Sequence record: MN871449.1
Length of the DNA: 64,000 nt
Strand: one strand, 5' to 3'
The translations under genes and the position numbers were made by a program. Within the stretch, counting starts at the first letter, position 1; every line of letters starts with the position of its first letter. The notes beneath the pieces were generated by a model. It ran no database searches, was not told where the DNA came from, and saw only the letters and a list, made by a program, of their open reading frames with translations. Positions 1-20,245 of the stretch are shown piece by piece.

Positions 1-584
1 ACGCCGTCCCCGACTGCACCAAAGTCCTCAAAAGACAACTGATCTGTAATAATCCGTTGCCAGTAGAATTCATTCCCGGCAGCAATCGTGCCGTTGTCAT
101 CCGCATTTACCCCTAAACGCGCAACGAAAATACCCCCACCCGTAACCCCGTCTTTGTAGTAACTCTTCAGCGTGACACGCTGTCCTTGGTACCATGGTTT
201 AAGCGTCCGTAATGCGTCGAAACTCTCTACTCCTTGTAACATGAATAAAGAGTTGACAATATGCGCATTCGTCGCGTAGCGAACTTGTGTCGTACTGTCT
301 GACATTAATGCAGAGTAAGTCCCGTTCCCTTGGTTTACATACCCCAAGACATAGTCTCGTGTACTGTTTTCGTAAACAAAGAAAACATTCCCCTCTGTAG
401 TTACACTGAGCCCGGCAGCAATCGTGCTGTACGCGTTCTCAAAACCTAACGTTTCTCTGAGGGTACCAATACTAACTTTTTCGGATTCGTTTCCATTCGC
501 TTCTGAGAGCGGAAGAAACGCATTCTCTGACGGATTAGAGCTGGGCGATAGTTCAGAAATTTTCAATGCAGTGATATCGGTCAT
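1..584 (-). CDS. Tailspike/depolymerase, N-terminal part (runs off window start; missing from ORF track)
   Basis: Manual translation: MTDITALKISELSPSSNPSENAFLPLSEANGNESEKVSIGTLRETLGFENAYSTIAAGLSVTTEGNVFFVYEN...SFDALRTLKPWYQGQRVTLKSYYKDGVTGGGIF...FEDFGAVG. It has the same KISEL..FENA..VFFVY anchor as the neighbouring spikes. Confidence 0.85.
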   Translation of the reverse strand, partial: MTDITALKISELSPSSNPSENAFLPLSEANGNESEKVSIGTLRETLGFENAYSTIAAGLSVTTEGNVFFVYENSTRDYVLGYVNQGNGTYSALMSDSTTQVRYATNAHIVNSLFMLQGVESFDALRTLKPWYQGQRVTLKSYYKDGVTGGGIFVARLGVNADDNGTIAAGNEFYWQRIITDQLSFEDFGAVGDG

Positions 585-614
585 TTCACGACTCCGATGT
601 AAACAAAAAATGGT

Positions 615-618
615 CATA
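615..618 (-). promoter_or_regulatory. Late promoter-like TATG (TTTTGTTTCGTATGAC)
   Basis: Same context as 4133; about 30 nt upstream of the tailspike start. Confidence 0.5.
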
Positions 619-744
619 CGAAACAAAAAAGAGAGGAGCTTTTCCGTATCCTTCTCTAGTTAATGTGCAATAAACCAAAACGTAATCTTTCAAGCTGTTA
701 ATCGTATGTACGATTGACTATTAGAGAGCTTAAGAGGCAAAATA

Positions 745-3700
745 ATGGCTGACATTTATGTTAAACTTTCTGAACTTTCTCGGCCGAGTACGCCAGTGAA
801 TGACTCAGATGTGGTGTTCATTTCCCAGTTAAACAATACAGAAAATACTTCTTCCGCAATGAGTATTTCTGATTTACGCAATTTACTCAATTTTGAAACA
901 GCTTTTGATAGTACTGTCGCAGGGTTAAGTAATACATCGGCGAATCAGATTTTCTTTGTTTACACCGATGACACCAAAACGAAAGTTCGTGCCTATGTAA
1001 ACCGGTCAGGTATTGCAGAAGTCATGAATGATGCTGACGGAAGTCCACTTTTATATCGCACGCGTAAAGGGTTAAATATTCTTGCCGGGAAAGATGAGTT
1101 AATCAATCCCGCGCAAGGGACCTCGCTGATAGCGATGGGTACAGGTGAGACAATAGCTGACGGTTTGGGCCATTGGCTCTCGGCGACAGTAGATATATTC
1201 AACATGACTGTTTCGCCTAATAAAATTAGCACTCGTGGATTTTATAAAGAAAAAGATGGCGGTGCTGGTGATTGGAACAAGACAGGCGTTGTCAATCTTT
1301 CATTGGCAGGAAAACACGTTATTACCGAGGGGAAGATCTATAACAAACTCGGGGTAGAATATCTCATTGATATCTCTAAAGGAGAAATTGACCCTTTAGC
1401 GAATGGCGCGATGGCTACTACCTACGACGAAGTGTGGTCAACAAAAGAAAACGTTGTATGTCTCGGCGATGCCATTAACGGGATTTTCAAGCAAATCCCA
1501 ATAGAAGTTTACACCTCCAATACCGCCGCCACTTATACTGGATATAAAAGATTACGAATAACGTTTTCTCCAAATCTTTATCGTATTTGTAAAAACGCGG
1601 TAAAAGTAAGGAACGGTGTGACTTATGACATGCGAGGGTCAACAATCTATGTTGTTCCTACCCCGTCTAATAGTTATCCCGTCACTGGTAAAAAGCTTAA
1701 TGGCTTCCAACATGGTTACGATGAAGTAAAAGAAAAATTCGATGCTATTAATGGGGCGAATTATTGGGGTAGCGTGAGTTGCCAAAATGTCACTTTCTTG
1801 GGCGGCGATATACGCGGTGATTTGAATGTCAGTAAAACTCCGGATCAATGTTCTTCGGGAGTTGGTATTTTAATCATTAACCCAGAATATGTTTTCCATG
1901 ACGGCGTAGCCATTTCGATGTTCACCTGGTGTGCGGTAGCGATGGCAGGTACAACGACGCAGAGCCTTTTCAATGACGGCACTGACTTTGATGACAACGT
2001 CAAAGACTATCGTTACATTCTTGATTTCATGGGGACTTCTCGTTTCGGTAATTTCTACGGGGCTAACTATGAAAACTGTCGTTTCCATTCTGGTTGGCGT
2101 GGCGTATTAAGAAGTAGCGTCGATTGGTCATATTGGAAGGGCGGGATTTGTACAAGTAACATCCATTGGCAAAACCCAAGCTCAAATAAATCCGGTACTA
2201 TCCCTTCTTACACAATGGTGGTAACTGGGACCGGATTTGATGCGAGTGGCGCTTATATATCCAATAACGGCGGGTTAGGCGTAGACTGTAACCCTTCGAA
2301 AGGGATTGTCTATACCACTGCAAAGGGACATAGCTTTACTGGCCTTTATACAGAGTGGACTTATCGTAATTTCGTTATTTCTAAATTTGGATATAACGAC
2401 GGTGTATGGAGCCGAAGCTGCTACCTTCACATTGGTGCTGTTTCACAGTATAAAAATGATAGCAAAAACTATTACATGTTGTCATTTGAAGATGGATCAT
2501 TCGGCTATTACGACAGCGTTACCCAAAAATGGGTTTGGCCAAATGACTATACCCAAGTACCCACTGCGGTTGGTGTAAGAGGTATTCAGATCGGTACGCC
2601 TGTCCGTGACGAAGGGGCTTTTCTCCATGGTGGTTACGACTTCAAATACGGGACGTATAACGTCGGAGGTGTTCTCGGGGAATTAGATTTTGACACCTTA
2701 CGAGACATCAAGCAATCAAAAGAATTTCTCAACCCTTACGGACTTTCTTTGAACAGCGGTGTCTGTTATCTACCGTTCAAAAACTTAGCGAAAGATAGTG
2801 TAGTTCATATCTGGCTTAAGGATCTTACCGGTAACTTCGATCCGAAAAAAATCTCTATTGGTCTAACGGGTAATATTGAAACAACCGTTACGAATAACAA
2901 TGATTTCGTAGCCTATGGCGAAACGGTAGTCGATTTTAAAAACGGTTATAAACTAATTACCGTTTTTAACAAACGCCCATACGGTACCGATGGAGTTGGT
3001 ACTTGGACACCGCAGGTTTCCGTTTATTTCCAGATTGATCCGGCTACGCCAATCATCTTGAAGGCGGTAGAGGCTTATACCGGTGGCGTAAGTGTTTTCC
3101 CTGGCGGTTGTGACTATACCCCGCAAGCCGATATGTTCTCGATAATGTCCTCAAATACTTACTCGGGGGTAAACAACGGAACAGGTGGTGGTATTTTTAA
3201 ACCTGGTGATATCGTCCGTCCTTTCATTCGCGTAGATAAACACGGTAATGATTTTAAGTTTTCTCCAACTATTGACTCTAACTATAGCGCGTATGATAAA
3301 ATCATTAAGAGCGGTATAACGTTAGATTCTGTTTTGAAGACAACGTTTACCGTACAAATTACATCTATCGATGTTGATAACAATCAGACACTGATCAAAG
3401 TACCTGATGCATCTGTTAAACTTGTCGTTATGGGTATCCCACTTTATATTTCTTCGGGCTCTTCCACTTCCGTAACAGGTCAACAACGACTAGTTAGACG
3501 TTTACTCAATAACGACGGTACGTATAGCACTACCTACGCGATCGATGGTATTGTAGGGAACGTTAATGATAACCTTGTTATCGATCAAAGACTACTCCCA
3601 AGTTACACGTTTTACCCATTCGAAAGTCTTTCGATTGGCGGGTCTTTATCGATGACAGCCGATAATTCGATGTTTTCTTTCAGTAACAATGGCGATTTGG

Positions 3701-4092
3701 GTTTCTTGAAAAAGAACGGTTCCCCTTCTAAATTAGCAATTGGTTCTGGGAATTCATTTAGTGTTTCGGCTTCGAACAAAACTACATTATCGGTATCTGA
3801 TACTTTAACTGATATTTTTAAAGTGGCAGCTACTGGGATCGTCACTGCTTATAACACGATTCTTCCCAGTGTAACAGGATCGTTTGATTTTGGTTCTTCT
3901 ACTGCCGGTTTTCGTAACGCTTATTTTACAGGTGCGATTACAATTAACGGTAACCCTGTCGGTGTAAAAGTTGATGTTCCAGCATCGATGACAGCAGCTG
4001 GTTCTGTTGGTCAATGGGCAGCCGATACTAGTTACTACTATGTTTGTGTTGCGCCTAATGTATGGAGACGAGTGGCTTTGAGTACATGGTAA
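745..4092 (+). CDS. Tailspike / capsule depolymerase (1115 aa)
   Basis: KLSEL..FETAF..IFFVY anchor, central Gly/Asn/aromatic beta-helix-like region, C-terminal ILPSVTGSFDFGSSTAGFRNAY and ...GQWAADTSYYYVCVAPNVWRRVALSTW fibre-tip modules. Confidence 0.85.
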   Translation: MADIYVKLSELSRPSTPVNDSDVVFISQLNNTENTSSAMSISDLRNLLNFETAFDSTVAGLSNTSANQIFFVYTDDTKTKVRAYVNRSGIAEVMNDADGSPLLYRTRKGLNILAGKDELINPAQGTSLIAMGTGETIADGLGHWLSATVDIFNMTVSPNKISTRGFYKEKDGGAGDWNKTGVVNLSLAGKHVITEGKIYNKLGVEYLIDISKGEIDPLANGAMATTYDEVWSTKENVVCLGDAINGIFKQIPIEVYTSNTAATYTGYKRLRITFSPNLYRICKNAVKVRNGVTYDMRGSTIYVVPTPSNSYPVTGKKLNGFQHGYDEVKEKFDAINGANYWGSVSCQNVTFLGGDIRGDLNVSKTPDQCSSGVGILIINPEYVFHDGVAISMFTWCAVAMAGTTTQSLFNDGTDFDDNVKDYRYILDFMGTSRFGNFYGANYENCRFHSGWRGVLRSSVDWSYWKGGICTSNIHWQNPSSNKSGTIPSYTMVVTGTGFDASGAYISNNGGLGVDCNPSKGIVYTTAKGHSFTGLYTEWTYRNFVISKFGYNDGVWSRSCYLHIGAVSQYKNDSKNYYMLSFEDGSFGYYDSVTQKWVWPNDYTQVPTAVGVRGIQIGTPVRDEGAFLHGGYDFKYGTYNVGGVLGELDFDTLRDIKQSKEFLNPYGLSLNSGVCYLPFKNLAKDSVVHIWLKDLTGNFDPKKISIGLTGNIETTVTNNNDFVAYGETVVDFKNGYKLITVFNKRPYGTDGVGTWTPQVSVYFQIDPATPIILKAVEAYTGGVSVFPGGCDYTPQADMFSIMSSNTYSGVNNGTGGGIFKPGDIVRPFIRVDKHGNDFKFSPTIDSNYSAYDKIIKSGITLDSVLKTTFTVQITSIDVDNNQTLIKVPDASVKLVVMGIPLYISSGSSTSVTGQQRLVRRLLNNDGTYSTTYAIDGIVGNVNDNLVIDQRLLPSYTFYPFESLSIGGSLSMTADNSMFSFSNNGDLGFLKKNGSPSKLAIGSGNSFSVSASNKTTLSVSDTLTDIFKVAATGIVTAYNTILPSVTGSFDFGSSTAGFRNAYFTGAITINGNPVGVKVDVPASMTAAGSVGQWAADTSYYYVCVAPNVWRRVALSTW

Positions 4093-4097
4093 TAAGT

Positions 4098-4121
4098 TGA
4101 GGGGGTCGTCAGACCCCCTCA
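4098..4121 (+). terminator. Intrinsic terminator
   Basis: TGAGGGGGTC-GTCA-GACCCCCTCA then T-rich tract. Confidence 0.8.
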
Positions 4122-4132
4122 GTTTTGTTTCG

Positions 4133-4136
4133 TATG
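4133..4136 (+). promoter_or_regulatory. Late promoter-like TATG
   Basis: T-rich-TATGA recurs at 705 (TATGT), 4133, 6178, 11223, 13494, 20591 and 21432 upstream of structural genes; the phiKZ late promoter core is TATG. Confidence 0.55.
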
Positions 4137-4162
4137 AGATTCTTTCACTTGAGGATAATATA

Positions 4163-6130
4163 ATGCCTAAGTCTTCAGATTCTATCGGAATCAAAATTTC
4201 TGAACTCGGTGACGCAGGCGTCATCAAAGAAAATGACGTTGTCCCGATTAACGCCAAAACCAGTGCGGGAGTTCCTTTCACTAAATCCACTAAAATTAAC
4301 GACCTCCGTCAAACGCTAGGCTTCGATAATGCTTTCCTGTCTGTGGATGCGGGCCTGAACGGAACCACGTCAGGGGACGTATTTTTCGTCTATGAAAGCG
4401 CGGCGAAACTCTGGGTACTGCAATACCAAAATAATGACGGAGTAGCTAACCCTATTCTGGGTTATGACAATGAACAAGTCAGGTTACCGACGAGCAGACA
4501 AATGAGAGCTGCAGCATCAGTTACAGAAAGTACCGGTATGAGCATTATTCCCATGGGTGCTGGTTCCCTGAATGACATTTCTGGCCAAACGACCTTTGAA
4601 AGCAATGGGGCGAAGGGAGACGGTATAACGGATGATACTGTTGCAGTACAAAAAACCTTAGAATTACTGAAGTTAGGTTATACTGTTCGTTCTAAAGAAT
4701 CGAATGCTCGTTACCGAATCACTTCTCAAATTACCGTCTACGCAGCTTCCGGAAAATTGATCATGGACCGTTCAAGGTTTGTGGTAGATAGTTCATTAAT
4801 GACTACCGGGTATGCTGTTCGGGTCGTAGGTGTCCCTGGCGCCACTTACAATTTAGGATCAGAGCTGGAAATTCGTTTACAAGGCCCTTACGGAGGACCT
4901 TCCGTTTCGAAACCACCTATAACACCTGTAGGGACATTAGATGGTATTGGGTTCTTCCCCGATGGTACAAACACCCAAGTGTCCACGGTGTTAGCTAAAG
5001 TGTGGGTGGAAGGATTTCGTGACAACATTTATATCGGCTCGCAGTCGACGTACCTTCTGCAATTTATACAGCCGGTTGTGGGTAAGTTCTGGCGATATGG
5101 CTGGCATTTCAATTGCGTCAACGACGCAGGGGAAAACATTTCAATCTTCGGTGGCGTAACGTATAATGGATTAAACGCTAACGGGAACGCTGCGGGCGTA
5201 TACGTTCCCAGTACCGGTCAGTATCTTGATGCGTATTTTTATTCGCACTCTTTTGACTATAGTGATCTTGTGTTTGATATCTCTACGGGAAATATTAATT
5301 TCATAGGGTGTCATTTCGAGAACAATTCCTCTAACCCGTACGGTAAGATGCTTTATACCTCTTCAAAAAGAAAACCGTTTGTCAATATCCAAAACACGTT
5401 TATTGACGGCGGAAATGACGTTGCCACCACGTATGCGAACCAAGGAACAACCGCAGGTAAACCTGTATGGTTCACTTTATCAGGTCCTTGTATTTTCCGA
5501 CTAGTGGGATGTCCTGCTGGAAAATACAATAAGATGGCGGCCGTTGATGTTGTTAAATGTACAGGTAGCGGTGCCCTCGTCAAAGTTGTCGATAATTATT
5601 TTGATATCTACGGGAATAATGACATGGTAAATATCGGCGATTATACGAACCCGCTGAGAAATTATAATTATAATACCGCAGATTTGACAGGTTGGTCTAC
5701 GATATATTCAGCAACGGGTACCGCTTTCCAACCTACGATAACTTACGATAACTCAAAATCAATTGGTGCCTCTGCGAAAGTGCTTAGCACAACAACGACC
5801 GGGGCATTGACGACGTTATTTGGCCAACGTTTACGCTGCTCGCCAGGACAAACTCTTTATTTAGCTACCACGCTTTATTGGGAAAATATTGTTTCCACAA
5901 ATGGCGGTTGTTATTTCGGTTATACATTTTACGACATTGAAGGTGTAGAAATTACCCATAACGTAATTGGGACGAATCTTTCAGGGACGACAGGTAGTGC
6001 ATCTAATGTTGTAAAATGCTCCGGATCGGTAATTGTTCCGCCTGGGGCAGCGACTGTTCACGTGGGTCTTCGTCATTATCAAACATCAGGTTCCGTTTAC
6101 TTGGGCCCTGTCAAAGCATTCCTTCAATAA
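4163..6130 (+). CDS. Tailspike / depolymerase (start corrected to MPKSS)
   Basis: SD GAGGA before ATG 4163; KISEL anchor; FESNGAKGDGITDDTVAVQ pectate-lyase-3-type entry motif; beta-helix; C-terminal CBM-like domain (...VPPGAATVHVGL). Confidence 0.85.
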   Translation: MPKSSDSIGIKISELGDAGVIKENDVVPINAKTSAGVPFTKSTKINDLRQTLGFDNAFLSVDAGLNGTTSGDVFFVYESAAKLWVLQYQNNDGVANPILGYDNEQVRLPTSRQMRAAASVTESTGMSIIPMGAGSLNDISGQTTFESNGAKGDGITDDTVAVQKTLELLKLGYTVRSKESNARYRITSQITVYAASGKLIMDRSRFVVDSSLMTTGYAVRVVGVPGATYNLGSELEIRLQGPYGGPSVSKPPITPVGTLDGIGFFPDGTNTQVSTVLAKVWVEGFRDNIYIGSQSTYLLQFIQPVVGKFWRYGWHFNCVNDAGENISIFGGVTYNGLNANGNAAGVYVPSTGQYLDAYFYSHSFDYSDLVFDISTGNINFIGCHFENNSSNPYGKMLYTSSKRKPFVNIQNTFIDGGNDVATTYANQGTTAGKPVWFTLSGPCIFRLVGCPAGKYNKMAAVDVVKCTGSGALVKVVDNYFDIYGNNDMVNIGDYTNPLRNYNYNTADLTGWSTIYSATGTAFQPTITYDNSKSIGASAKVLSTTTTGALTTLFGQRLRCSPGQTLYLATTLYWENIVSTNGGCYFGYTFYDIEGVEITHNVIGTNLSGTTGSASNVVKCSGSVIVPPGAATVHVGLRHYQTSGSVYLGPVKAFLQ

Positions 6131-6139
6131 AATAAACTC

Positions 6140-6167
6140 TAGAGAGGGGCCTTTTGGCCCCTCTCTA
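6140..6167 (+). terminator. Intrinsic terminator
   Basis: TAGAGAGGGGCC-TTTT-GGCCCCTCTCTA. Confidence 0.8.
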
Positions 6168-6177
6168 TTTGTTTTCC

Positions 6178-6181
6178 TATG
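6178..6181 (+). promoter_or_regulatory. Late promoter-like TATG
   Basis: TTTTCCTATGAC after terminator. Confidence 0.55.
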
Positions 6182-6223
6182 ACTATTTTTACAGCCCTAT
6201 TGCCGACAATGAGGTTTCTTGCA

Positions 6224-8980
6224 ATGGCCAATAACACAAGAAAAATTTCCGAACTTTCGAGTAAGGGTATTGTTCCAGAATCTGCTCTATTGCCAGTGGC
6301 AGTAGCGGGAGCAGAAAATGAAACATACCGCACCACGTTAAATAATCTTCGATCAAATCTTCTTTTTGAAAATGCTTACGAAACCCTCGCAGAAGGTATT
6401 GCGGCTACTATCAAAGATGAAATCTTTTACGTCTATACTGACGATAGCCAACTCTACGTCGCAGCGTTTATTAACGTCAACGGTGCTTCTGCCACGGCTG
6501 TCTATAAAGACAATACTCCGGTTATCTACGGCACCGGAAAAATGATGGCGGACGGTAAGTTCGGCTCCTACACGTCATATGTCAGTTACCTTTATAACAA
6601 CGGTTCTGCTAACGGTGGTGAAACGGAAATCGCATTGCCCTTCGACTGTTTCGATGTCTCAGAGATGTTCTTGAACGGTGGTCATCAGTTCAAGGGGTTG
6701 AACTACACGTTTGATCGGTTATCGAACAAAGTCAAATTAAAAGGGCCATTAACGGCGGGTGCTTTCGTTGTCTTCTACGTAAGACCTTACCCGGGTTCGC
6801 CTATCACGCCAGTAGAACCTGGTATTACCGACTACGTCAACGTAACGTGGCTATATAACGACGGCGCAGCAGTGGGTGGAGAAACGTCACTTACCCCTCC
6901 GTGGACATTCAAAACAGTCCCTGTTATTTACATCAACGGCTCAAAACAAGTCCTGAATAAGCACTATGAAGTTGATAGCACCGGATTGAAGATTAACCTT
7001 TCGAAAGCGCTGAATGCTAACGACATCGTTGAAGTCTTACTGGGTGGTTCTCGGTCGGTCATCACCGCACAGGTATCGGGAACACCGGCAGAAATTCTTT
7101 TGACGCTGGGGCAAACGACAGGTGCGGCAAAAGTCAATACCAGTTATGGTGTGAGCTTAGAGCAAGTCGTTCAAGGTGTTTACGGCGTGGAATCAGTGGA
7201 TTCACTGCGGTCTCGTCAACCGGGATTTGAAGGGGAACGTATTAAAGTAAAATCTTACGCAGTTGGTACTAAAATTGGCGGCGGGGAATTTATTGGTCAC
7301 ATCGGCGGAGGTGTAACAGAAGACTATGGTACAATCATTGTCGGTGGGAATTTCTATTGGGAGCGTGTTATCCCCAATTCAGAAATTAATGTTTCATTTT
7401 GGGGTGCGCAACCAGGGACAGATATCACGATACCTTTACAACGTGCGATCGCGTATGTCCAGAAATTAACAATAGGGACTAATTTTTACAGTCGTCCTTC
7501 GATCAGTATTTCAGCAGGGAGCTATCTGATATCTGCAACAATTGTCGCACCGACATCAATCAGTATCGTTGCGAAAGGTAATGTTAACATTGTTGCATCG
7601 TCTAACTTTACAGGGTCGTACCTGATCAAGTTCCAAAATACTGACGCCTTAACGAATGTCAATCTTTGGGAAGGTGAGAACCTTTCGGCTGATGGCGGTG
7701 TATTGCGACTGGATGGACAAGGCCGTGCTATAACTACTCTTTCTGGAATATTTATCGGTAACGAAGCAGCTAGTATGTCCAACGCCAGAAACGTTTCATT
7801 CCGTAATGTCGTTGTGACCGAATGCTATCGTGCATTGACGTTCTCTTCCATCGATACTTATCTATTCTCTGCGACTAAATGTCGTTTCGAACAAAACGGT
7901 ATTAGTTTGAATGTTCCGTCTACAACGTCCAGTAACTCCGGCGAACGTATGTCGTTTACTAACTGTACATTTGGCGGTACCAACGAACATCACGTATACC
8001 TTGCAGCACCTGGTTTTGATGTTTCGTTCATGAACTGCAGTTTTGACTTTACTAACGGTAGTATATTAGTCATTACGGGATCGTCTGGTTATAATGCAGT
8101 TAAGTTTACTGACTGTCATGCCGAAGCTTGGAATGGGTACGTATTAGATGTAGTTGGCTCGCCGTCTAACTGTGCGGTATACTTTACCAATTGCGATTTC
8201 CTTCCTCGTCTGCGTTCTGGTCAGAAATCAGACTCTACCTTAGGACTGGCCAACAGCCCATCTCGACCACTCTTTAACGGAAACCAGGTTGCAGTGTATT
8301 GGAATGGCTCTGAGATCAAACACGAAGTCAAACCATACACCGAAGATCTCTATTTACACTCTTCCGGTAAACCCGTGGCGGTTAGTGGGTATGTAAAAGA
8401 TCCCTACTATAACGTCCCGTCCGCGAACGCTATTATTAATAGCGGTTTTGATTTCAGTGCGGAAACTACTGGGACAACTGTCACGAGTACTTCCTCTACG
8501 TTAGCGAAATTTTCTGTTGGATACATCGCGGGTATGACAGGGGTAATTGCCGACAGAACAGATGTTACAGGTAAAGTTCTTGCTTTAACCGGTACAAGTT
8601 CTGCGAGTAACGTGACTTTAGTTGGAACAGAATATTTTGCCTGTAAAGCAGGAGATATGTTCGGGGTTGTTGCCGCAATGCAGCTACTGAACTCGACGGG
8701 GAATAACCGTATTACCCCATACGTTTATTTTTACAATGATCAAAAAGTATTATTATCTGGCGGCCAAGTAGTTGGTAACAATACCGCGATGGGAAGTGTA
8801 TTTTCCGACACTACCTTACCAAATTACTCCGCCGGTACAACACGATTCATCGCTTCTAGTCCGGTGAAAATAAGAGCACCTGTTGGCGCAGCGTTCGCTC
8901 GTGTTGCAGCGACTTTTTCTGACATTACAGGTACGGTAAACATATCCAGATTGTCACTATTCCGTTTTGAGACAGAGTAA
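6224..8980 (+). CDS. Branching tailspike with two XD (T4 gp10-like) docking domains plus depolymerase
   Basis: SD GAGGT before ATG 6224; KISEL anchor; two YNxGxAxGGET...G..Q...Y domains resembling CBA120 TSP4 XD domains; beta-helix; C-terminal CBM-like domain. Confidence 0.85.
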   Translation: MANNTRKISELSSKGIVPESALLPVAVAGAENETYRTTLNNLRSNLLFENAYETLAEGIAATIKDEIFYVYTDDSQLYVAAFINVNGASATAVYKDNTPVIYGTGKMMADGKFGSYTSYVSYLYNNGSANGGETEIALPFDCFDVSEMFLNGGHQFKGLNYTFDRLSNKVKLKGPLTAGAFVVFYVRPYPGSPITPVEPGITDYVNVTWLYNDGAAVGGETSLTPPWTFKTVPVIYINGSKQVLNKHYEVDSTGLKINLSKALNANDIVEVLLGGSRSVITAQVSGTPAEILLTLGQTTGAAKVNTSYGVSLEQVVQGVYGVESVDSLRSRQPGFEGERIKVKSYAVGTKIGGGEFIGHIGGGVTEDYGTIIVGGNFYWERVIPNSEINVSFWGAQPGTDITIPLQRAIAYVQKLTIGTNFYSRPSISISAGSYLISATIVAPTSISIVAKGNVNIVASSNFTGSYLIKFQNTDALTNVNLWEGENLSADGGVLRLDGQGRAITTLSGIFIGNEAASMSNARNVSFRNVVVTECYRALTFSSIDTYLFSATKCRFEQNGISLNVPSTTSSNSGERMSFTNCTFGGTNEHHVYLAAPGFDVSFMNCSFDFTNGSILVITGSSGYNAVKFTDCHAEAWNGYVLDVVGSPSNCAVYFTNCDFLPRLRSGQKSDSTLGLANSPSRPLFNGNQVAVYWNGSEIKHEVKPYTEDLYLHSSGKPVAVSGYVKDPYYNVPSANAIINSGFDFSAETTGTTVTSTSSTLAKFSVGYIAGMTGVIADRTDVTGKVLALTGTSSASNVTLVGTEYFACKAGDMFGVVAAMQLLNSTGNNRITPYVYFYNDQKVLLSGGQVVGNNTAMGSVFSDTTLPNYSAGTTRFIASSPVKIRAPVGAAFARVAATFSDITGTVNISRLSLFRFETE

Positions 8981-9018
8981 AAGGAGGAGGGGGTTCCCCT
9001 CCTTAAAAGGAAAAATAA

Positions 9019-11184: not shown

Positions 11185-11187
11185 ATT

Positions 11188-11219
11188 AATTGAGAGAGGG
11201 AGTATCCCCTCTCTCAATT
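11188..11219 (+). terminator. Intrinsic terminator
   Basis: AATTGAGAGAGGG-AGTATC-CCCTCTCTCAATT. Confidence 0.8.
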
Positions 11220-11222
11220 TTC

Positions 11223-11226
11223 TATG
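11223..11226 (+). promoter_or_regulatory. Late promoter-like TATG
   Basis: TTTTCTATGAC after terminator. Confidence 0.55.
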
Positions 11227-11256
11227 ACTTCGTCTTATTCACATAGAGGTGTAATG

Positions 11257-13242
11257 ATGTTAACTGATTTTAATAAACCGCGAGGGAGTAACGGTGAATA
11301 TTCTCTTTTAACCGTGGGGTCCGTAACTGAATTAAGGGCTTTAGAGCCTTGGTTTGACGGCCAACGTGTTCTATTAAAACGAGCGGTTGTGGGCGGACCT
11401 GACGTAAACGAAATAATGACGTACAGAGCCAGTTCAACAGTCGCAGATAACGACTACAGCGTATTTAAAACAGCTAAAGGAGCTAACTGGCTCCTCGATA
11501 CAACAAAACCTATTAACGTATGGATGGCTGGTTTTTCTGTCTCTTTAAATAACCTCTCCCAGTGCATCAACAAAATAACTAGTGACATCGTCAAAATTGT
11601 TATTGGGAGAGGTTATATCGCAAATGGAACTTACCGTCTGCGCGTACCGCTATTAGATAACGCTACCGGCGAAACAGTTTATAAAATGACAGCGACAGTG
11701 CGTATCCCGCCGTTTGTTTCTGTTATTGTTGACACTAACCAGACTTGGGATTTTAGTGCCTTTACTACCGGGAATGGCGTAGAAATAACCGGTGAGTTTA
11801 CTGGACTTACTCGATCTGCAGCAAACCCCTTCACTAATAACGCGGGGAGTTCTGCCAGCTACACTGAAGTACTGGACACTAACGCACTTTTCATTTTAGG
11901 CCCCGGATACGACAAAACTACGTTCCATGGTATTTCTTTAGGAAATACAACATACCCATCTGGTGGTTTTGTCCATACTCGAGAAGTAAAAATCACTGGC
12001 GTAAAAGTTGCGCAATTTTACGGCGGAATCAGGATTGGTTCTACTGATACGTATTTAGATGTGGTGGAGAACTGCGCTTTTTATCGAAATGGATATGGTA
12101 TCGTCACCGATGCAGGCGTGAACTGCGTTAACTCCGGTGAGAACATGCGCTTCGTCAACTGCCTCATTGGTGACAACTATTTGGGCGGAGTCTACCGAAA
12201 CGATACTGTCCACATGTTTAAATATTTTGGTTGTAGTTTCGACTATAATACAAACGATGTTGTCCTCTATTCTCCAGTGAACATAGGTCAGGATACGTTG
12301 ATCGAGTGTCACGTTGAAGGCTTCCGTTATTTAGCCAATTGCCCAACTCGTACAACAGGCGCTGGCGAAAATAATTTTAAAATGATCGGCGGAAATATCT
12401 TCATGTACGCGTTTGTTAATGATCCTTACCGTGGAGTCAGGACAATTGGTTTTGCGACCACTACACGCACCGCTATCGACCTTGACAACGTAAACATTTT
12501 CTGTTACGGCCCGCACGTTAATAGCGCTTATGGGAGTTACAAGGCGTACGATCCCACTAACCAGATCAAAATAAGAATACGTTACCCTTTACGCGGACAA
12601 ACCTATCGTTTTCTGCCATCTTACGATACCTCTGACGGTTACATTTTGAATAATACAGGGCTACTGTTTAATGGTACCGCTGGCGCGGCCTTACCGACTG
12701 CCAGGGCAATTGGACAGTGGTACGTAGTTGCTAACGGTTCAACTATCGTCTATGGCTCTGCAGCAGATGCAGATTCGGATGGCCTGATCCCAGTGACAAT
12801 TACTGCTACAAGTACAACTAACTCGGTTAACCTTCTCTGGGGTACGCCAATTAATAACAGTAACAGTCAACAGAAATTTCATGTGTCCTGTTCAGTCAAA
12901 GCCGGTGCTGCAACTACTGGCAACGTTTACGTACGTGGTGTGTGTCGTTTAGTTTCATCTCAGACTTTTACTAATAACGCCACGACTAACGTAGTGTCAA
13001 TGAGCGAAAACTATAGTGGATATGCCTTGGGTCCACAGCAAGATATTTTAAACTCACTAACAAAAACTGGCATCGCCCTTACCGCAGACAATTACATGGG
13101 TACCTACATGCTTTCATGCGATACCGGTACGTCTCAGTACGGTTACGCTGGACTTAACTTTACCGGTTTCGTTGGTACCATCCAAGTTAAGCTGCCTGCG
13201 GTTTGGTTTTCCGATCAACATCCGACTTTAGGGTATTTGTGA
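11257..13242 (+). CDS. Tailspike / depolymerase (start corrected to MLTDFNKPRGS)
   Basis: SD AGAGGT; FNKPRGS short anchor; SVTELRALEPWFDGQRV domain; beta-helix (DTYL..NSGENMRF..CSFDY). Confidence 0.85.
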   Translation: MLTDFNKPRGSNGEYSLLTVGSVTELRALEPWFDGQRVLLKRAVVGGPDVNEIMTYRASSTVADNDYSVFKTAKGANWLLDTTKPINVWMAGFSVSLNNLSQCINKITSDIVKIVIGRGYIANGTYRLRVPLLDNATGETVYKMTATVRIPPFVSVIVDTNQTWDFSAFTTGNGVEITGEFTGLTRSAANPFTNNAGSSASYTEVLDTNALFILGPGYDKTTFHGISLGNTTYPSGGFVHTREVKITGVKVAQFYGGIRIGSTDTYLDVVENCAFYRNGYGIVTDAGVNCVNSGENMRFVNCLIGDNYLGGVYRNDTVHMFKYFGCSFDYNTNDVVLYSPVNIGQDTLIECHVEGFRYLANCPTRTTGAGENNFKMIGGNIFMYAFVNDPYRGVRTIGFATTTRTAIDLDNVNIFCYGPHVNSAYGSYKAYDPTNQIKIRIRYPLRGQTYRFLPSYDTSDGYILNNTGLLFNGTAGAALPTARAIGQWYVVANGSTIVYGSAADADSDGLIPVTITATSTTNSVNLLWGTPINNSNSQQKFHVSCSVKAGAATTGNVYVRGVCRLVSSQTFTNNATTNVVSMSENYSGYALGPQQDILNSLTKTGIALTADNYMGTYMLSCDTGTSQYGYAGLNFTGFVGTIQVKLPAVWFSDQHPTLGYL

Positions 13243-13436
13243 TGATTTATATCTACAAAGATACTGTGCGAGAGAACGTTTATTTTCTTTCCAGAATTGA
13301 TTTGGGGGAGGCTATCGTTTTCTTTGAAGAAGTAGAAAACTATCAGGAAGCCGCACTTGGGTTCTTATCGGAAAAGGGTCTAGATGGTTCTTTTCTTTTA
13401 GAAGACAGGACTAGCGAAGACGATTCCGGTAGTTGA
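13242..13436 (+). CDS. Small acidic protein coupled to tailspike; possible assembly chaperone (64 aa)
   Basis: ATG overlaps the tailspike TGA; MIYIYKDTVRENVYFLSRIDLGE...; followed by a terminator. Confidence 0.6.
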   Translation: MIYIYKDTVRENVYFLSRIDLGEAIVFFEEVENYQEAALGFLSEKGLDGSFLLEDRTSEDDSGS

Positions 13437-13460
13437 ATTGTTTTATAGGTTGTTCATAGC

Positions 13461-13484
13461 GAGTAGGGCCGATCGGCCCTACTC
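13461..13484 (+). terminator. Intrinsic terminator
   Basis: GAGTAGGGCC-GATC-GGCCCTACTC. Confidence 0.8.
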
Positions 13485-13493
13485 TTGTGTTTT

Positions 13494-13497
13494 TATG
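13494..13497 (+). promoter_or_regulatory. Late promoter-like TATG
   Basis: TTTTTATGAC after terminator. Confidence 0.55.
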
Positions 13498-13543
13498 ACG
13501 ATCTAGATACCCTCTTATTTACCCAGACTATACAGGTACCGAA

Positions 13544-16222
13544 ATGGATAAGTCTAGTTTAAAAATTACTGAATTACCGGCGTTGTCGGTAGCCTCTGAG
13601 AATGGGTTTATTCCCATTGCCCAAGTTAAAGAAGAAAACGACACGTATAAAACAACACTCCGTGCGTTACGTGAAAGTATCATGTTTGAGAACGCCTACT
13701 CGAGTACTGCGGCGGGTGTTTCGGCAACGGTTCCTGGCGATGTGTTCTTTGTTTACACTGACGATACTAAAGAGCATGTTCAAGGCTGGGTTAACAGTGC
13801 CGGTGGCGCCACCCCGTTATTGAATGCTAATAGTGAACAAATCACTTACGGTACTTACGCGCTGTTGAATAAAGCTCTGAAGAATAAAGGGGCGATTGTA
13901 CAGTGGGTTTATAATGGCGGGTTAAGTAACGGCGGGGAGCAAACCTTCACGGTTCCTTTAGCGGGGAATGTCGCAGTACAGGAAGTGTACGTCGATGGTT
14001 TGCGTCAGTTTAAAGACGTAGGTTTTGAATTAGTTGCTGGCGATATGTTGAGCTTTAAACTCGCTACACCAGTAAAAGAAAATCAAACCGTAGTAGCGAT
14101 CTGTTTTGGTAGCGATGACATTGAGAAAGTCAACGAAGCATTGCTCAGTCTATTTAGCGGGCCGACAGGTGCTGCAAATATCGGAATGGCAGCAGGCGGC
14201 ACCGTAGAGGCCGCCATAGGCGCGCGGGTAGCTACTGCTGATTTAAGTAGCGTCTATGGAGCAGGGCTGGTCGGTACAGGGAATTACGCTGATCTTCGCA
14301 ACTATACGGGTTATGCAAGCACGTTGTCTCTTTACGGTTACAGCACCGCCGGTGATGGTGGGGAAGGGATTTTCGATCGACAAAGCGTAGTTGGTAGTAA
14401 AACAGATGATGACTGCGTTCATCTTGTTGATAAATTAGGCAGACTTTGGAAACGTCGAATCAATGGGAACGTAGTGAAGCTCGCCTGGGCAGGCGTTAAG
14501 AGTTACGACCAAACCACCGCACCCCAAGATACCGCATTTAAAAATGCATTGAAAGCAGCCGGACAACTCTCCTCTAACGGTTACCCGCAATCGATTATTA
14601 CCGGGTTAGATAAAGGCGTGGTCTACCTTGCTCAGCGCCATTATATTCGCTGTGGAACATTCCCTGAATCTCTGTCGTGGATTCTTCCAACTAATTCCGG
14701 AGATCGTTTCGGTATTACGGGGCGTTATGCGTTAGATCAAGGGGCGGGTTGGTTTGTGGTGCAAGCGAACCGTCCGCTGTTCGATATTGAGATTGACAAC
14801 ACCTCGCTGACATTCCAGGTCAATAATTACACCACTGCACAGATTGCTGGCTTGGTGGACACTAACTACGCGTTACGACTGGAAAGTATGGTTAACGCCC
14901 CGGATATTAAGATATCGGCAGGTGCTTACGCAGGAACCGTACTTTACTCCTTAGGGAAGTCTAATTATACCGATGTAACAGCGAAGTGGCCAGATCTTAC
15001 CGTCGTCCTACCGTCCATTCAGAATCTTGGTACATTAAGGATGAATAACAAAACAGTGGGTCGCGGGTTCTATCTTCGAAACACTGGTTCAGGCTTAGGT
15101 AAAGTTGAATACCTTTGGGAGCAGAATAATTCCCAAGCTTCCGTTCTGAAAGAAATGTACGATGTAGGACTAGAACATTACGAAGACTTTGTCCCACCGC
15201 TGCTGGCGACAGGTGGATTGATTATTGATACTTGCGGAACAGTAACGATAGGAAGTCTGTTAGTAGGTTCAGGCGGCGGTCCTCACGTCAGAATTTGGGA
15301 TACTCCAGCGATCACTATCAACAAGATCTTTGGTGTCCAAGGCGGCCCGACTCTTGCCCAAACCCTCCCCGGCGCGTACTGTATTGAAATCTGTAACTCC
15401 CGTGTTTCAATCGGCCTTGTTAATGCGTATTATCCTGGCGAGTTTATTCGCATGGGCTACAATGCTTACGTTGGTATTGCCGATATTACGGGCTGGTATA
15501 TGTCAAGAGTGGTCTACGTCACTAACGATACGACCAAGTTACAATATACCGGACAACGCATTGGTCAACCTAATGATACTGGTATTGTCACAATTTCGAA
15601 AGGGATCTTCTACAATCTCGATTACTACGCTGGAGGTTACGCAGCGCAACCTGTGTTCTACGTAGACGCAACTGTTCTTTACGGGAAAATGACGCTCGAT
15701 AATATCGAATTCTATAATACCCATTCTGGGTGGACTAACCTCACCGAAGATCAGATGTACATCGTCCGTGTAGACAGTCCTAATCCCAATTTCTTCTTTA
15801 GTACTCGGAACTGTAAATGGGACGATAATAATTTTAATTACGTCATTTACCTTAAGCTACAAAGTCAACTGGCGTATTTCCAGAGCGCACAAACAAGCTA
15901 CTCACGTATTCGATATGGGGACGGGACACAATCATCTTTTGGAATGCGGGACGCTACCCATGTTGATTTGACGACAACCGCACTACCATTAACAGGCGTT
16001 GACTACGTCTATAATTATCGTCGCGCGGGTAAGTACCACGGTGATTTGACTGTCCCTTCTGGTGGTACATGCGTTATCAAAGTGAACGACCAAATATTGT
16101 ACAATTATACAGCCGCGGGTACTTACCCGTTGAACTTGGTGCTGTATTACCAAGAAAGGGTCAACATTACGATCACCGGCGCAGTCACGCTAACGAACTC
16201 GACGTGGCGTTATACGGTATAA
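13544..16222 (+). CDS. Branching tailspike with one XD docking domain plus depolymerase
   Basis: KITEL..FENAY..VFFVY anchor; QWVYNGGLSNGGEQ..VQEVYVDGLRQFKDVGF XD-like domain; beta-helix. Confidence 0.85.
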   Translation: MDKSSLKITELPALSVASENGFIPIAQVKEENDTYKTTLRALRESIMFENAYSSTAAGVSATVPGDVFFVYTDDTKEHVQGWVNSAGGATPLLNANSEQITYGTYALLNKALKNKGAIVQWVYNGGLSNGGEQTFTVPLAGNVAVQEVYVDGLRQFKDVGFELVAGDMLSFKLATPVKENQTVVAICFGSDDIEKVNEALLSLFSGPTGAANIGMAAGGTVEAAIGARVATADLSSVYGAGLVGTGNYADLRNYTGYASTLSLYGYSTAGDGGEGIFDRQSVVGSKTDDDCVHLVDKLGRLWKRRINGNVVKLAWAGVKSYDQTTAPQDTAFKNALKAAGQLSSNGYPQSIITGLDKGVVYLAQRHYIRCGTFPESLSWILPTNSGDRFGITGRYALDQGAGWFVVQANRPLFDIEIDNTSLTFQVNNYTTAQIAGLVDTNYALRLESMVNAPDIKISAGAYAGTVLYSLGKSNYTDVTAKWPDLTVVLPSIQNLGTLRMNNKTVGRGFYLRNTGSGLGKVEYLWEQNNSQASVLKEMYDVGLEHYEDFVPPLLATGGLIIDTCGTVTIGSLLVGSGGGPHVRIWDTPAITINKIFGVQGGPTLAQTLPGAYCIEICNSRVSIGLVNAYYPGEFIRMGYNAYVGIADITGWYMSRVVYVTNDTTKLQYTGQRIGQPNDTGIVTISKGIFYNLDYYAGGYAAQPVFYVDATVLYGKMTLDNIEFYNTHSGWTNLTEDQMYIVRVDSPNPNFFFSTRNCKWDDNNFNYVIYLKLQSQLAYFQSAQTSYSRIRYGDGTQSSFGMRDATHVDLTTTALPLTGVDYVYNYRRAGKYHGDLTVPSGGTCVIKVNDQILYNYTAAGTYPLNLVLYYQERVNITITGAVTLTNSTWRYTV

Positions 16223-16227
16223 TAACA

Positions 16228-16249
16228 CCAGAGAGGAATCCCTCTCTGG
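16228..16249 (+). terminator. Hairpin, weak T-tract (possible leaky terminator)
   Basis: CCAGAGAGG-AATC-CCTCTCTGG. Confidence 0.55.
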
Positions 16250-16268
16250 CTTTCTACAAGGAATAATC

Positions 16269-18092
16269 ATGTTAAATCGTTTAGTCCAACCCAACGGAAG
16301 TACAACAAAAGAGATCATTCTTCGTAACCTTTGTACTCTACTGGGATTAGAAACAAATCAAATAGCGGTACTCGAGACAAATGTCGACCTTTCCAATGTA
16401 AACGTGCTTTTTGATTTTAATACAAACAACTGTTTCGAAACAGTTTCAGCTACGGGAACGTTGCAAAGTTTCACCAGAAACCAAGATGGAACTTTAAACT
16501 TGGTAACGACAACAGGAAGTTTTAACGTTGGCTCATGGAGAGATCTTGGGGTAATTGATCAGGCTTTGAGCGTCGTTGAAAATTTGTTAGCGGAATTTAA
16601 GGGCGAAATTGATAATAAAGGAACAACTGACGGAAACGGGCCCTCTGCTTCTGACGATATTTCCGTTGAAGATCAAATGAGCGTAAAAGGTCAATACGAC
16701 GTCAACCCGGCCCCTGAAGATATTCAAGCGGTAGCTGGCATTAACTTCGGCGGAAAGAAAAATCTGGGTACCATTCTCATTGATAACCGCGGAAGACTGA
16801 AAACCTCAGCTACCGTTGACGGACACCGAACTGCAAGAAACATTCATGTACCTTTTGCTGAAGGCACAGGCTACTGGAGAGGTCCTTATCAAGACGTCAT
16901 TGCGCGATTCCCTGTAGACGGCCAAGCGGATGATGAAACCTCCCCAGCGATCATGTGGAGTTATGATAAAACCACAAATCTCCCAAGAATCTTTACTGTT
17001 TCTCCGCTCCAAACAGGGTTAGTCCCTTTCACTGACGCTGGGCGTTATCGTTGGAGTTGGGCGAACGGCACAGCTGTCAGAGAATTAGCTCAGCTTGATT
17101 CTATTGGACGGAGTCTGGCCAATTCTTACGACACCTACTTCACCGTAGACAGTGCTAATGCTAACTTCATTAATTTCGCAACCATTGTAAACCCATCCAA
17201 TCTTATCGGCGCACGTTTCTCCTGCTTAATTAATATTGGGAACGCGACAAATAGCAATGTTTTGACATATGTTCTCGATGTCAATTTACCTGATGTCGTT
17301 ACCGCGTTTACTCAATACAACATTAATAAGTACGTTCGTTTTACAGGGATTGGTTCGGGTAAGATGTTGGATAATAGCGATGTAAAAAACGCCCTCCAAC
17401 CGGTTATTGGTTTGGTTCAAGATACAACAACCGGAACGGTGAATTTCTACCTAAGAACTCCGGCGCATTCCACTTATTTGAGTTCTACTTGCGTGAACTC
17501 CGGAAATGCAAACCTGATCACATGGAATTGGAATAAATACATGGGCGGGTCACAATTGACGTCGCTCAGTGGTTCGACCCCTGCAGGGATTATTTGGGCG
17601 AACACCGCCTATACAGGGTCAAACTATCGTCGCGTGTTACTCAATGATGGTTCGAGTTTTGACGTACCAGAGGGTTATGCTGTATTGCGTTGTCATTACA
17701 ACCACCCGGCTGATTCGGTTATCAATGCCGCTCCCTTTAAGAAATTCGTTTCTTCTTTTTGTTACGCCACCAATTTTGAAAGTGGTGTTGATTCATTAAC
17801 ATGCACAATACCGAGTCTTAATTTCACGATCACAGGTGCTGATCTTGCGACAGATATGCCTTGGCAGATAAGGCTACCTCAGATACCAAATAATGCTAAC
17901 AGTTATCGATACGTTATTGGTGCAACGGATACAACTGCACATACATTTGCGTTTAGCGTTAGGCAAGTCCTTACTACTGCCACACTGAATACAACAACTA
18001 ACGCGATCACGGTAACAGAAGCGTTGAGTAGCTCCCCAGTAGATCTGGGCCCGGCAGTTTGGATAGACGTGTTGGTAAAACTCGCAAATTAA
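16269..18092 (+). CDS. Tail fibre/spike with Kuttervirus-type head
   Basis: MLNRLVQPNGSTTKEIILRNLCTLLGL..VDLS..VLFD head related to 9019 and to CBA120 TSP heads; beta-rich body. Confidence 0.75.
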   Translation: MLNRLVQPNGSTTKEIILRNLCTLLGLETNQIAVLETNVDLSNVNVLFDFNTNNCFETVSATGTLQSFTRNQDGTLNLVTTTGSFNVGSWRDLGVIDQALSVVENLLAEFKGEIDNKGTTDGNGPSASDDISVEDQMSVKGQYDVNPAPEDIQAVAGINFGGKKNLGTILIDNRGRLKTSATVDGHRTARNIHVPFAEGTGYWRGPYQDVIARFPVDGQADDETSPAIMWSYDKTTNLPRIFTVSPLQTGLVPFTDAGRYRWSWANGTAVRELAQLDSIGRSLANSYDTYFTVDSANANFINFATIVNPSNLIGARFSCLINIGNATNSNVLTYVLDVNLPDVVTAFTQYNINKYVRFTGIGSGKMLDNSDVKNALQPVIGLVQDTTTGTVNFYLRTPAHSTYLSSTCVNSGNANLITWNWNKYMGGSQLTSLSGSTPAGIIWANTAYTGSNYRRVLLNDGSSFDVPEGYAVLRCHYNHPADSVINAAPFKKFVSSFCYATNFESGVDSLTCTIPSLNFTITGADLATDMPWQIRLPQIPNNANSYRYVIGATDTTAHTFAFSVRQVLTTATLNTTTNAITVTEALSSSPVDLGPAVWIDVLVKLAN

Positions 18093-18101
18093 GAGGTTTA
18101 G

Positions 18102-19829: not shown

Positions 19830-19847
19830 TCTCGATTCTTTTTCACA

Positions 19848-19857
19848 TCTATATTAC
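19848..19857 (+). promoter_or_regulatory. Early promoter-like motif TCTATATTAC
   Basis: Matches the phiKZ early consensus TATATTAC; one of 7 intergenic copies. Confidence 0.65.
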
Positions 19858-19869
19858 AATTGTGAAGAG

Positions 19870-19982
19870 GAAATAAGACACCCTCCGATTACTCCTATTT
19901 AACCGTTTCTCACAGTGCCGGTTAATAACGAGACATTCATTTTAATTTATAAGTTCGGGGACTTCGGTCCCTGTCTTATTTC
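19870..19982 (+). ncRNA. Candidate structured RNA / 5' leader (three-stem)
   Basis: P1 GAAATAAGACA(19870-80)/TGTCTTATTTC(19972-82); P2 TTAACCG(19899-905)/CGGTTAA(19919-25); P3 GGGAC-TTCG-GTCCC; directly after an early promoter motif. Confidence 0.4.
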
Positions 19983-19999
19983 ACCTTTAAGGGTCAACT

Positions 20000-20245
20000 A
20001 TGTTTACTCCCCGTATAGCGCTCTTAGAGAGCCTACAAGAGACAATCTCATTCGTCCCTGACGAGAACCTACCTTTATTAAACGAAGCCGCACTGTTGCT
20101 CTCAGAGCTTCTCCCGCCGTGGGACAATAAAGCCGCTTACATCACCCCCGTAGAAAACGCACTCACTGGCGCCCATCAATTCGGTAAAATCGTAGAAGAT
20201 CATTTCTACCCTGCCGAAGACATCCTGAAAAACAATATAGACTAG
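20000..20245 (+). CDS. Hypothetical protein (81 aa), probably early
   Basis: Downstream of a TCTATATTAC motif and structured leader; SD AAGGG; ends at a terminator. Confidence 0.65.
   Translation: MFTPRIALLESLQETISFVPDENLPLLNEAALLLSELLPPWDNKAAYITPVENALTGAHQFGKIVEDHFYPAEDILKNNID

Follow-up and report, generated by a model that had tools for sequence, protein, structure and literature searches.

Anchors, docking domains and address peptides in the spike gene cluster of the Klebsiella jumbo phage KpXa_1, and a possible two-tier arrangement of its spikes

To our knowledge, phages of the phiKp24 type carry more kinds of capsule-degrading spike than any other described Klebsiella phage, and the question addressed here is how a dozen or more spike trimers are arranged on one baseplate. 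The window analysed, 64,000 nucleotides of sequence record MN871449.1 (phage KpXa_1), contains, by its sequence, the cluster of receptor-binding genes of a Klebsiella jumbo myophage of the phiKp24 type. Its genes are named by the window coordinate at which they start (g745, g6224 and so on), and negative positions lie upstream of the window in MN871449.1. Each spike would consist of an N-terminal address module and an exchangeable enzymatic body. The address modules of main concern are the KISEL anchor, the XD docking domains that follow it in two proteins, and the heads or short peptides of the spikes that may be docked there.

The closest described cluster is that of phiKp24, which belongs to the same clade and has the same gene order, with several different spike bodies. 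In the published model (Ouyang et al. 2022, PMC9700779), the fibres are ranked by N-terminal length and gp306 is the sole primary fibre. The main text names gp306 and gp301, the counterparts of g6224 and g13544, as dock carriers, and the T4gp10-like docks reported there lie at the same residues as the XDs described below (PMC9700779); the supplement places the domain in gp301 at residues 61-194 (PMC9700779). The XD docks are therefore already known. Neither the text nor the supplement of that paper describes a shared anchor, six anchor types or three peptide classes, and the published cryo-electron tomography of phiKp24 has no resolved contacts.

Other phages combine similar modules in different ways. 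In the Kuttervirus CBA120, where XD3 binds a TD1 head (PMC11414711), the logic of an anchored XD carrier and head-bearing spikes is the same, the XDs of KpXa_1 matching those of TSP4 and TSP2 and its heads those of TSP3 and TSP1. However, CBA120 has one anchored protein, whose anchor is unrelated to KISEL by sequence or fold, while KpXa_1 has eight anchored spikes, two of which are XD carriers. The N4-like phage G7C (gp66/gp63.1) and the Shigella phage B2 (Gp49/Gp48) provide the closest XD sequences (about 40% identity over both XDs) and the best PDB matches, and in both the partner spike has the same head type and is encoded by the adjacent gene. The B2 gp48/gp49 complex was co-purified and its structure is 9d84 (PMC11654681, from which the 9d80-9d84 structures were identified). 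Unlike KpXa_1, these are podophages with two XDs and a single partner gene (PMC11654681), and their N-terminus ahead of the XDs attaches to the podophage tail and is unrelated to the KISEL anchor. In KP32, which has one dock and one peptide on a T7-like anchor, the branching domain of receptor-binding protein 1 (RBP1) binds the first 29 residues of RBP2, with predicted contacts at L2, D3, F5 and N6 (PMC13352976). RBP2 of this type has a short N-terminal peptide without a head domain, as does g11257; L2, F5 and N6 of g11257 coincide with the contacts predicted for KP32gp38 (PMC13352976), although so short a peptide does not allow the match to be assessed statistically. The Alcyoneusvirus phages RaK2/phiK64-1 are also Klebsiella jumbo phages and have about ten fibre proteins that mix D1-like heads and TSP4-like XDs (PMC10253068), but they belong to another clade, that paper reports no KISEL anchor for them and no such phage appears in the anchor searches.

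Window positions 1-20000 correspond to MN871449.1 124001-144000 at 100% identity. The record is entitled "Serratia phage KpXa_1", carries an UNVERIFIED_ORG flag and is without annotation; despite this name, its host field reads Klebsiella pneumoniae and its close relatives are all Klebsiella phages. The conserved parts of the window share 84-96% identity with other Klebsiella jumbo phages, among them vB_KpM_FBKp24 (phiKp24), for which the nucleotide identity across conserved parts is about 86%. For the N-terminal adaptor modules the identity is 78-96%, the annotated regions of phiKp24 and KpLz-2_45 are syntenic with the KpXa_1 cluster with gene order kept, and the genes of the spike region are all intact. 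KpXa_1 is thus an actual relative of phiKp24 and not a mere look-alike. The original prediction had drawn phiKp24 in as a parallel; the cluster type is indeed the same, but since the clusters are syntenic the comparison is one of kinship, not analogy, and the docks had been published.

The KISEL anchor is a module of about 105 residues at the N-terminal end of the spike. The five N-termini in the window align with 15-16 invariant columns and 24-42% identity. Between window positions -18000 and 64000, a hidden Markov model (HMM) derived from the anchors' own sequences picks out exactly seven open reading frames (ORFs), with E-values from 4e-45 to 8e-40, the next ORF being at 0.46. Five of the seven start at 584 (minus strand), 745, 4163, 6224 and 13544, and the remaining two are minus-strand genes upstream of the window. 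All five anchored proteins named in the original prediction are recovered in this way, but they are only part of the set, as an HMM scan of the rest of the genome, made in pieces, adds one anchored spike and one small anchor-only protein, giving KpXa_1 eight anchored spikes and one anchor-only protein in total. Both extras are also carried by phiKp24. The anchor-only protein (about 207 residues, MN871449.1 226338-226958) has a tail of about 100 residues after the anchor and no spike body; it is conserved as MOC16_gp260 in phiKp24, and similar short proteins are present in Serratia phages.

An exhaustive profile search among 1.84 billion representative proteins finds 137 members of the anchor family, nearly all of which have the anchor at residues 1-108 of proteins of 570-1350 residues. 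Among phage records the anchor is found in 23 genomes, mostly in 6-9 copies each, all 23 being from jumbo phages that are phiKp24-like (Klebsiella), Moabite-like (Serratia) or from Pectobacterium. The anchor profile has no match among PDB sequences (best E 0.17), and its confident AlphaFold model, with a predicted local distance difference test (pLDDT) score of 88, has no fold match among solved structures (best E 0.5) and matches only members of its own clade among the predicted viral structures of BFVD. The anchor is therefore a family without a solved relative, restricted to a single clade of jumbo phages from Klebsiella, Serratia and Pectobacterium. A D1/TD1-like or TSP4-anchor-like domain was also considered, on the hint of a BLAST comparison of g9019 with an anchored spike, and was rejected because the anchor has no match in the PDB by sequence or by fold. 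The two halves of the anchor profile (about 2-45 and 47-96) each weakly match 3-6 tandem internal repeats in unrelated long metagenome proteins, and the anchor may be built from two repeat-type sub-modules, weak as these matches are. A PhuZ tubulin and a nuclear shell protein are annotated in the record of Serratia phage Moabite, so that the family reaches at least one phage of the nucleus-forming type.

The anchors from 10 genomes or contigs fall into six core orthologous types, with about one of each per genome and sometimes two. Moabite has eight consecutive anchored spike genes (eight sites in a tblastn search of the whole record), while a scan of 90 kb around its cluster finds neither XD nor head. 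The anchor thus works without XDs, as a first-tier attachment should, and XDs and heads occur together, the Klebsiella clade having both and the 90 kb of Moabite neither. In the arrangement that we favour, the anchor most likely fixes the eight spikes of the first tier directly to the virion. The published phiKp24 model differs in that only the g6224 orthologue gp306 would touch the baseplate. It agrees with g6224 having the longest conserved N-terminal module (about 400 residues) and the most XDs, and has been put forward for phiKp24 in print (PMC9700779), but its ranking is based on length only. The g6224 anchor is the same as that on seven other spikes, so that its attachment is not special; merely three XDs would have to serve more than a dozen other spikes, and the eight anchored spikes of Moabite have no XD in their cluster. 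A single primary fibre is accordingly very unlikely, and direct attachment of all eight anchored spikes is the reading carried forward here.

Two of these first-tier spikes would carry docks behind the anchor, g6224 having two and g13544 one. The XD envelopes given by the HMM are residues 113-192 (XDa) and 199-280 (XDb) of g6224 and residues 112-192 of g13544, in agreement with the positions at which XD-like segments had been predicted, and their homology to solved XDs indicates that they are genuine XD domains. By the HMM envelopes, the anchor comes first, then the XD or XDs, the neck and the beta-helix, which places the XDs between the attachment module and the body. Across both XDs, g6224 matches Moo19 gp82 (9d80_D, E 6e-28) and B2 Gp49 (9d83_D, 1e-27), both XDs match a Kuttervirus TSP2-type chain (6w4q_A), and 96% of the pair aligns with the G7C tail fibre protein at 40.6% identity (E 5e-31). 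XDa matches residues 245-332 of the N-terminal fragment of CBA120 TSP4 (7rfo_A, 3e-11), while XDb matches residues 187-286 of the Klebsiella phage tail fibre 7xy1_A, a segment that is presumably a KP32-type branching domain. A single-sequence PDB search with g13544 gives nothing useful and a profile is needed; built from eight orthologues, the profile of its XD matches 9d83_D (1e-15), 9d80_D, residues 264-333 of 7rfo_A (2e-7) and 7xy1_A, and PHROG family 12242 matches this XD as well.

HMM scans of the genome in pieces find exactly three XDs in the whole of KpXa_1. These scans replaced tblastn, which was too insensitive for a genome-wide count and missed even the XD of g13544. Hidden XDs in g745 or other ORFs were also considered, and none was found either with the HMM from the window XDs or with a broader one from 80 XD sequences.

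The spikes encoded by g9019, g11257 and g16269 have N-termini of a different kind. Single-sequence PDB searches with the three give nothing useful, and profiles are needed here too. The D1 head profile, for which g9019-type and g16269-type sequences of the phiKp24 family alone were used, matches CBA120 TSP3 (6nw9/5w6f) from residue 1 (residues 1-86, E 8e-10), TSP1 (4oj5, 1e-7), G7C gp63.1 (4qnl, 2e-7) and B2 Gp48 (9d84_A, 5e-7). N4-like and Kuttervirus spikes that are encoded beside XD genes have N-termini of the same kind. Of the three Kuttervirus-type heads expected from the original prediction, those of g9019 and g16269 are borne out by these matches, whereas g11257 has no D1 head but only its first 11-15 or so residues, followed by a neck motif; its DFNKP class is without D1 throughout (9 distinct sequences). 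The head peptides form three classes tied to gene position, FIQP (g9019), DFNKP (g11257) and LVQP (g16269), and the FIQP-class peptide is kept in 10 relatives. Within a class, residues 1-11 are 75-90% identical, compared with 33-47% for residues 12-95. In the g11257 class, in which the peptide lies directly ahead of the enzymatic part, the figures are 90% and 33%.

A whole-genome scan finds no heads or peptides in KpXa_1 beyond these three, so that the count of three XDs against three heads, as predicted, is exact for the genome. An off-cluster spike with a similar-looking peptide was considered as a fourth head and rejected, as its N-terminal domain is of the P22 tailspike type (1lkt, 7sg7) and its body is KP32gp38-like. 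An apparent hybrid in the contig of one relative, with an LVQP peptide on a position-1 D1, was also rejected, its head being closest to other LVQP heads.

The second-class genes were also predicted to lie directly downstream of the XD genes, and the gaps are indeed small: 39 nucleotides between the end of g6224 and the start of g9019, and 47 between g13544 and g16269. This order is conserved among relatives. In 10 of 10 genomes or contigs, one gene of the FIQP peptide class and one of the DFNKP class come after the two-XD gene, with an anchored gene inserted between these two in one contig. Behind the one-XD gene there is a single LVQP-class gene in eight of nine relatives and a pair in MJ359. 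Bodies are swapped directly behind the address modules. Conservation ends at about residue 400 in g6224 (an N-terminal part kept in 9 relatives), 235 in g13544, 125 in g4163 and 108 in g745, and the g11257 body (residues 16-661) is 90.6% identical to that of an MJ359 spike with another head type.

In the second tier, g9019, g11257 and g16269 would most likely hang by N-terminal docking peptides of about 11 residues on XD trimers, the peptide being joined to a D1 head in g9019 and g16269 and standing alone in g11257. The most likely assignment would place g9019 and g11257 on g6224 and g16269 on g13544. A finer guess puts g9019 on XDa, g11257 on XDb and g16269 on the g13544 XD, because XDa and the g13544 XD resemble the CBA120 TSP4 XD3, which docks D1 heads, and because XDb resembles the branching domain in 7xy1, of the kind that docks a bare peptide in KP32-type podophages. 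We regard XD-mediated attachment of the three spikes as moderately probable and hold the exact pairing with less confidence. The scheme is supported by the homology of XDs and heads to docking pairs validated or solved elsewhere; by the match of three XDs to three heads genome-wide, with the order of XD gene and then heads conserved; by the distinctness of the three peptide classes and the recombination of bodies just behind the address modules; and by the co-occurrence of XDs and heads and the six anchor types at about one each per genome.

The XDs might instead pair with one another. Were the g13544 XD to bind a g6224 XD and so join the two anchored spikes, fewer than three XDs would be free for heads. 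CBA120 TSP2 and TSP4 are joined through their XD2 domains, which bind each other and not heads (PMC11414711), and all XDs of the cluster are mutually homologous, that of g13544 being closest to XDa (33% identity). Yet g6224 and g13544 each have an anchor of their own, so that each could attach by itself. In TSP4, both the g13544 XD and XDa match residues 245-333; this stretch is the final XD of the fragment and is read as the head-docking XD3, not as XD2. Three conserved head classes also fit three docks. We consider such pairing quite unlikely.

The two-tier tree had been predicted in outline, and homology, gene order and the Moabite anchors support it, but it leaves out at least five further spike-like proteins, and several other points weigh against it. 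One dock per head is not a rule, because MJ359 has four heads for three XDs, with two LVQP-headed spikes behind its single-XD gene, N4-like phages have two XDs and one head gene, and CBA120 uses XD2-XD2 pairing. Gene adjacency may reflect shared inheritance and not contact. The AlphaFold model of g13544 residues 1-235 is poor (pLDDT 58), and its fold match to the Gp49 XD is therefore weak: the top match of this low-confidence model is the 69-residue B2 Gp49 XD in 9d84 (E 6e-3, probability 0.99, template modelling score 0.56 on the target). T4 gp10 itself was never returned in the sequence or fold searches, so that the gp10 link comes from the literature, where the HHpred probability for T4gp10 in the phiKp24 supplement is merely 42-47% (PMC9700779).

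MJ359 also bears on the specificity of the docks. If they were shared or promiscuous, any head could sit on any XD, virions would be mixed, and adjacency would record inheritance and not fixed pairing. Besides the four heads for three XDs of MJ359, the head in front of a given body may differ from phage to phage, some genomes carry an anchor type twice, and a non-cognate branching domain is still functional in KP32 and K11 (PMC13352976). In the 10 genomes compared, however, the three peptide classes stay distinct and each keeps to its gene position, conservation being much stronger in the first 11 residues than beyond them, and the two extra heads of MJ359 are of the same class and could share one dock type. 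Promiscuous docking is thus unlikely. The two-tier reading is the best available and is plausible; we infer each physical contact in it from homology, counts, gene order and body exchange, which are themselves observed.

Table 1. Features of the KpXa_1 spike cluster (window coordinates in nucleotides, nt; aa, amino acid residues)
Feature	Position	Strand	Remarks
Anchored spike gene, 5' part (first 194 codons)	1..584	minus	Anchor HMM E 6e-41
Same spike gene, whole	-1461 to 584	minus	Anchor domain about nt 270-584
g745, anchored spike/fibre, 1115 aa	745..4092	plus	Anchor aa 1-106 (nt 745-1062), HMM E 8e-41
g4163, anchored spike, 655 aa	4163..6130	plus	Anchor about aa 6-108, HMM E 8e-40
g6224, anchored two-XD spike, 918 aa	6224..8980	plus	phiKp24 gp306 orthologue
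g6224 modules	anchor 6224-6535; XDa 6560-6799; XDb 6818-7063	plus	HMM envelopes; neck and beta-helix follow
g9019, putative secondary spike, 721 aa	9019..11184	plus	Position-1 address peptide MQTNFIQP...; phiKp24 gp304 counterpart
g9019 D1-type head, aa 1-95	9019-9303	plus	Head profile
g11257, putative secondary spike, 661 aa	11257..13242	plus	phiKp24 gp303 counterpart
g11257 address peptide MLTDFNKPRGS..., about aa 1-15	11257-11301	plus	Neck directly after
Small acidic ORF, 64 aa	13242..13436	plus	ATG overlaps g11257 stop codon
g13544, anchored one-XD spike, 892 aa	13544..16222	plus	phiKp24 gp301 orthologue
g13544 modules	anchor 13544-13858; XD 13874-14119	plus	HMM envelopes
g16269, putative secondary spike, 607 aa	16269..18092	plus	Position-3 address peptide MLNRLVQP...; phiKp24 gp300 counterpart
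g16269 D1-type head, aa 1-95	16269-16553	plus	PHROG tail-spike head match aa 1-91
g18102, adaptor-less spike-like protein, 575 aa	18102..19829	plus	Starts 9 nt past g16269 end
g21461 and g23538, paralogous spike-like proteins, 686/689 aa	21461..25607	plus	DUF7941 N-terminal domain

The features of the cluster are collected in Table 1. The spike at the left end of the window is 98% identical to its orthologues in KpLz-2_45 and KpZh_1. The body of g745 belongs to the tail-fibre family phrog_15695 (PHROG match 2e-263), and besides its anchor region only the last 78 residues are conserved in relatives. The anchored N-termini of g13544 and g6224 are 33% identical over residues 1-184 of g13544 (E 6e-28). 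The start codon of g11257 is supported by a GAGG 7 nucleotides upstream and by a hairpin at 11188-11219. Small ORFs like the one that follows g11257 come after the same body in phiKp24 and, behind a different head, in MJ359; because the MJ359 equivalent follows the same body with another head, the ORF travels with the body, and its 64-residue product is probably a factor specific to the g11257 body, resembling an assembly factor. Strong hairpins, G+C-rich and with stems of 10-14 base pairs, lie between most spike genes (at 4094-4125, 6140-6167, 13461-13484 and 19956-19973 besides the one just mentioned), and phiKp24 annotates terminators at equivalent places. They may indicate that the cluster is transcribed as several units, or they may mark recombination boundaries.

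At least five spike-like proteins are without anchor, XD or head, namely g18102, its upstream paralogue, g21461, g23538 and the off-cluster spike. The paralogue of g18102 lies at window positions -7891..-6215 and is 30% identical to it. Both of these adaptor-less proteins start within about 12 nucleotides of the end of a preceding spike gene, g16269 in one case and the gene at -6218..-4224 in the other; the bodies of these two spikes are 26% identical, while the address is a head in one and an anchor in the other. The pair is present in phiKp24, KpLz-2_45 and KpZh_1 and absent where the associated body is absent. This suggests that adaptor-less protein and upstream spike form a cassette of body and partner, or that they represent a further mode of branching.

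The N-terminus of g21461 and g23538, which are 27% identical to each other, matches the Pfam family DUF7941 (E 2e-18 and 9e-19) and is a further adaptor class. A stand-alone DUF7941 protein of 188 residues is encoded on the other flank of the cluster, at window positions -8506..-7943, and the DUF7941 arrangement of Moabite is the same as that of KpXa_1. The off-cluster spike (MN871449.1 196162-198411, minus strand) has a particle-binding domain of the P22 tailspike type at its N-terminal end, a fourth kind of attachment module in the genome, and its body matches KP32gp38 (6tku, E 9e-36).

The modules and counts first noticed in this cluster are correct and far beyond chance. The novelty lies in the anchor family with its orthologous types, in the three classes of address peptide and in the finding that XDs and heads occur together; none of the papers checked gives an account of the anchor family or of the head classes for the phiKp24/Moabite clade, and in DepoCatalog the N-termini were removed ahead of the analysis. 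Together these modules give a parts list at the level of sequence, that is, which spikes share which address module, how many docks there are and where bodies recombine. The parts list refines the published cartoon of phiKp24 into specific contacts that can be checked, the wiring itself being inferred. A tentative and somewhat doubtful extension is that the anchors are position labels, in which case at least six anchor types and three peptide classes would define at least nine addresses on a multi-socket scaffold. The DUF7941 proteins that flank the clusters of Klebsiella and Serratia jumbo phages are possible components of this scaffold for the anchored spikes and may be included in it. If the anchors are position labels, the N-termini alone could tell how a particle with over a dozen types of spike is built.

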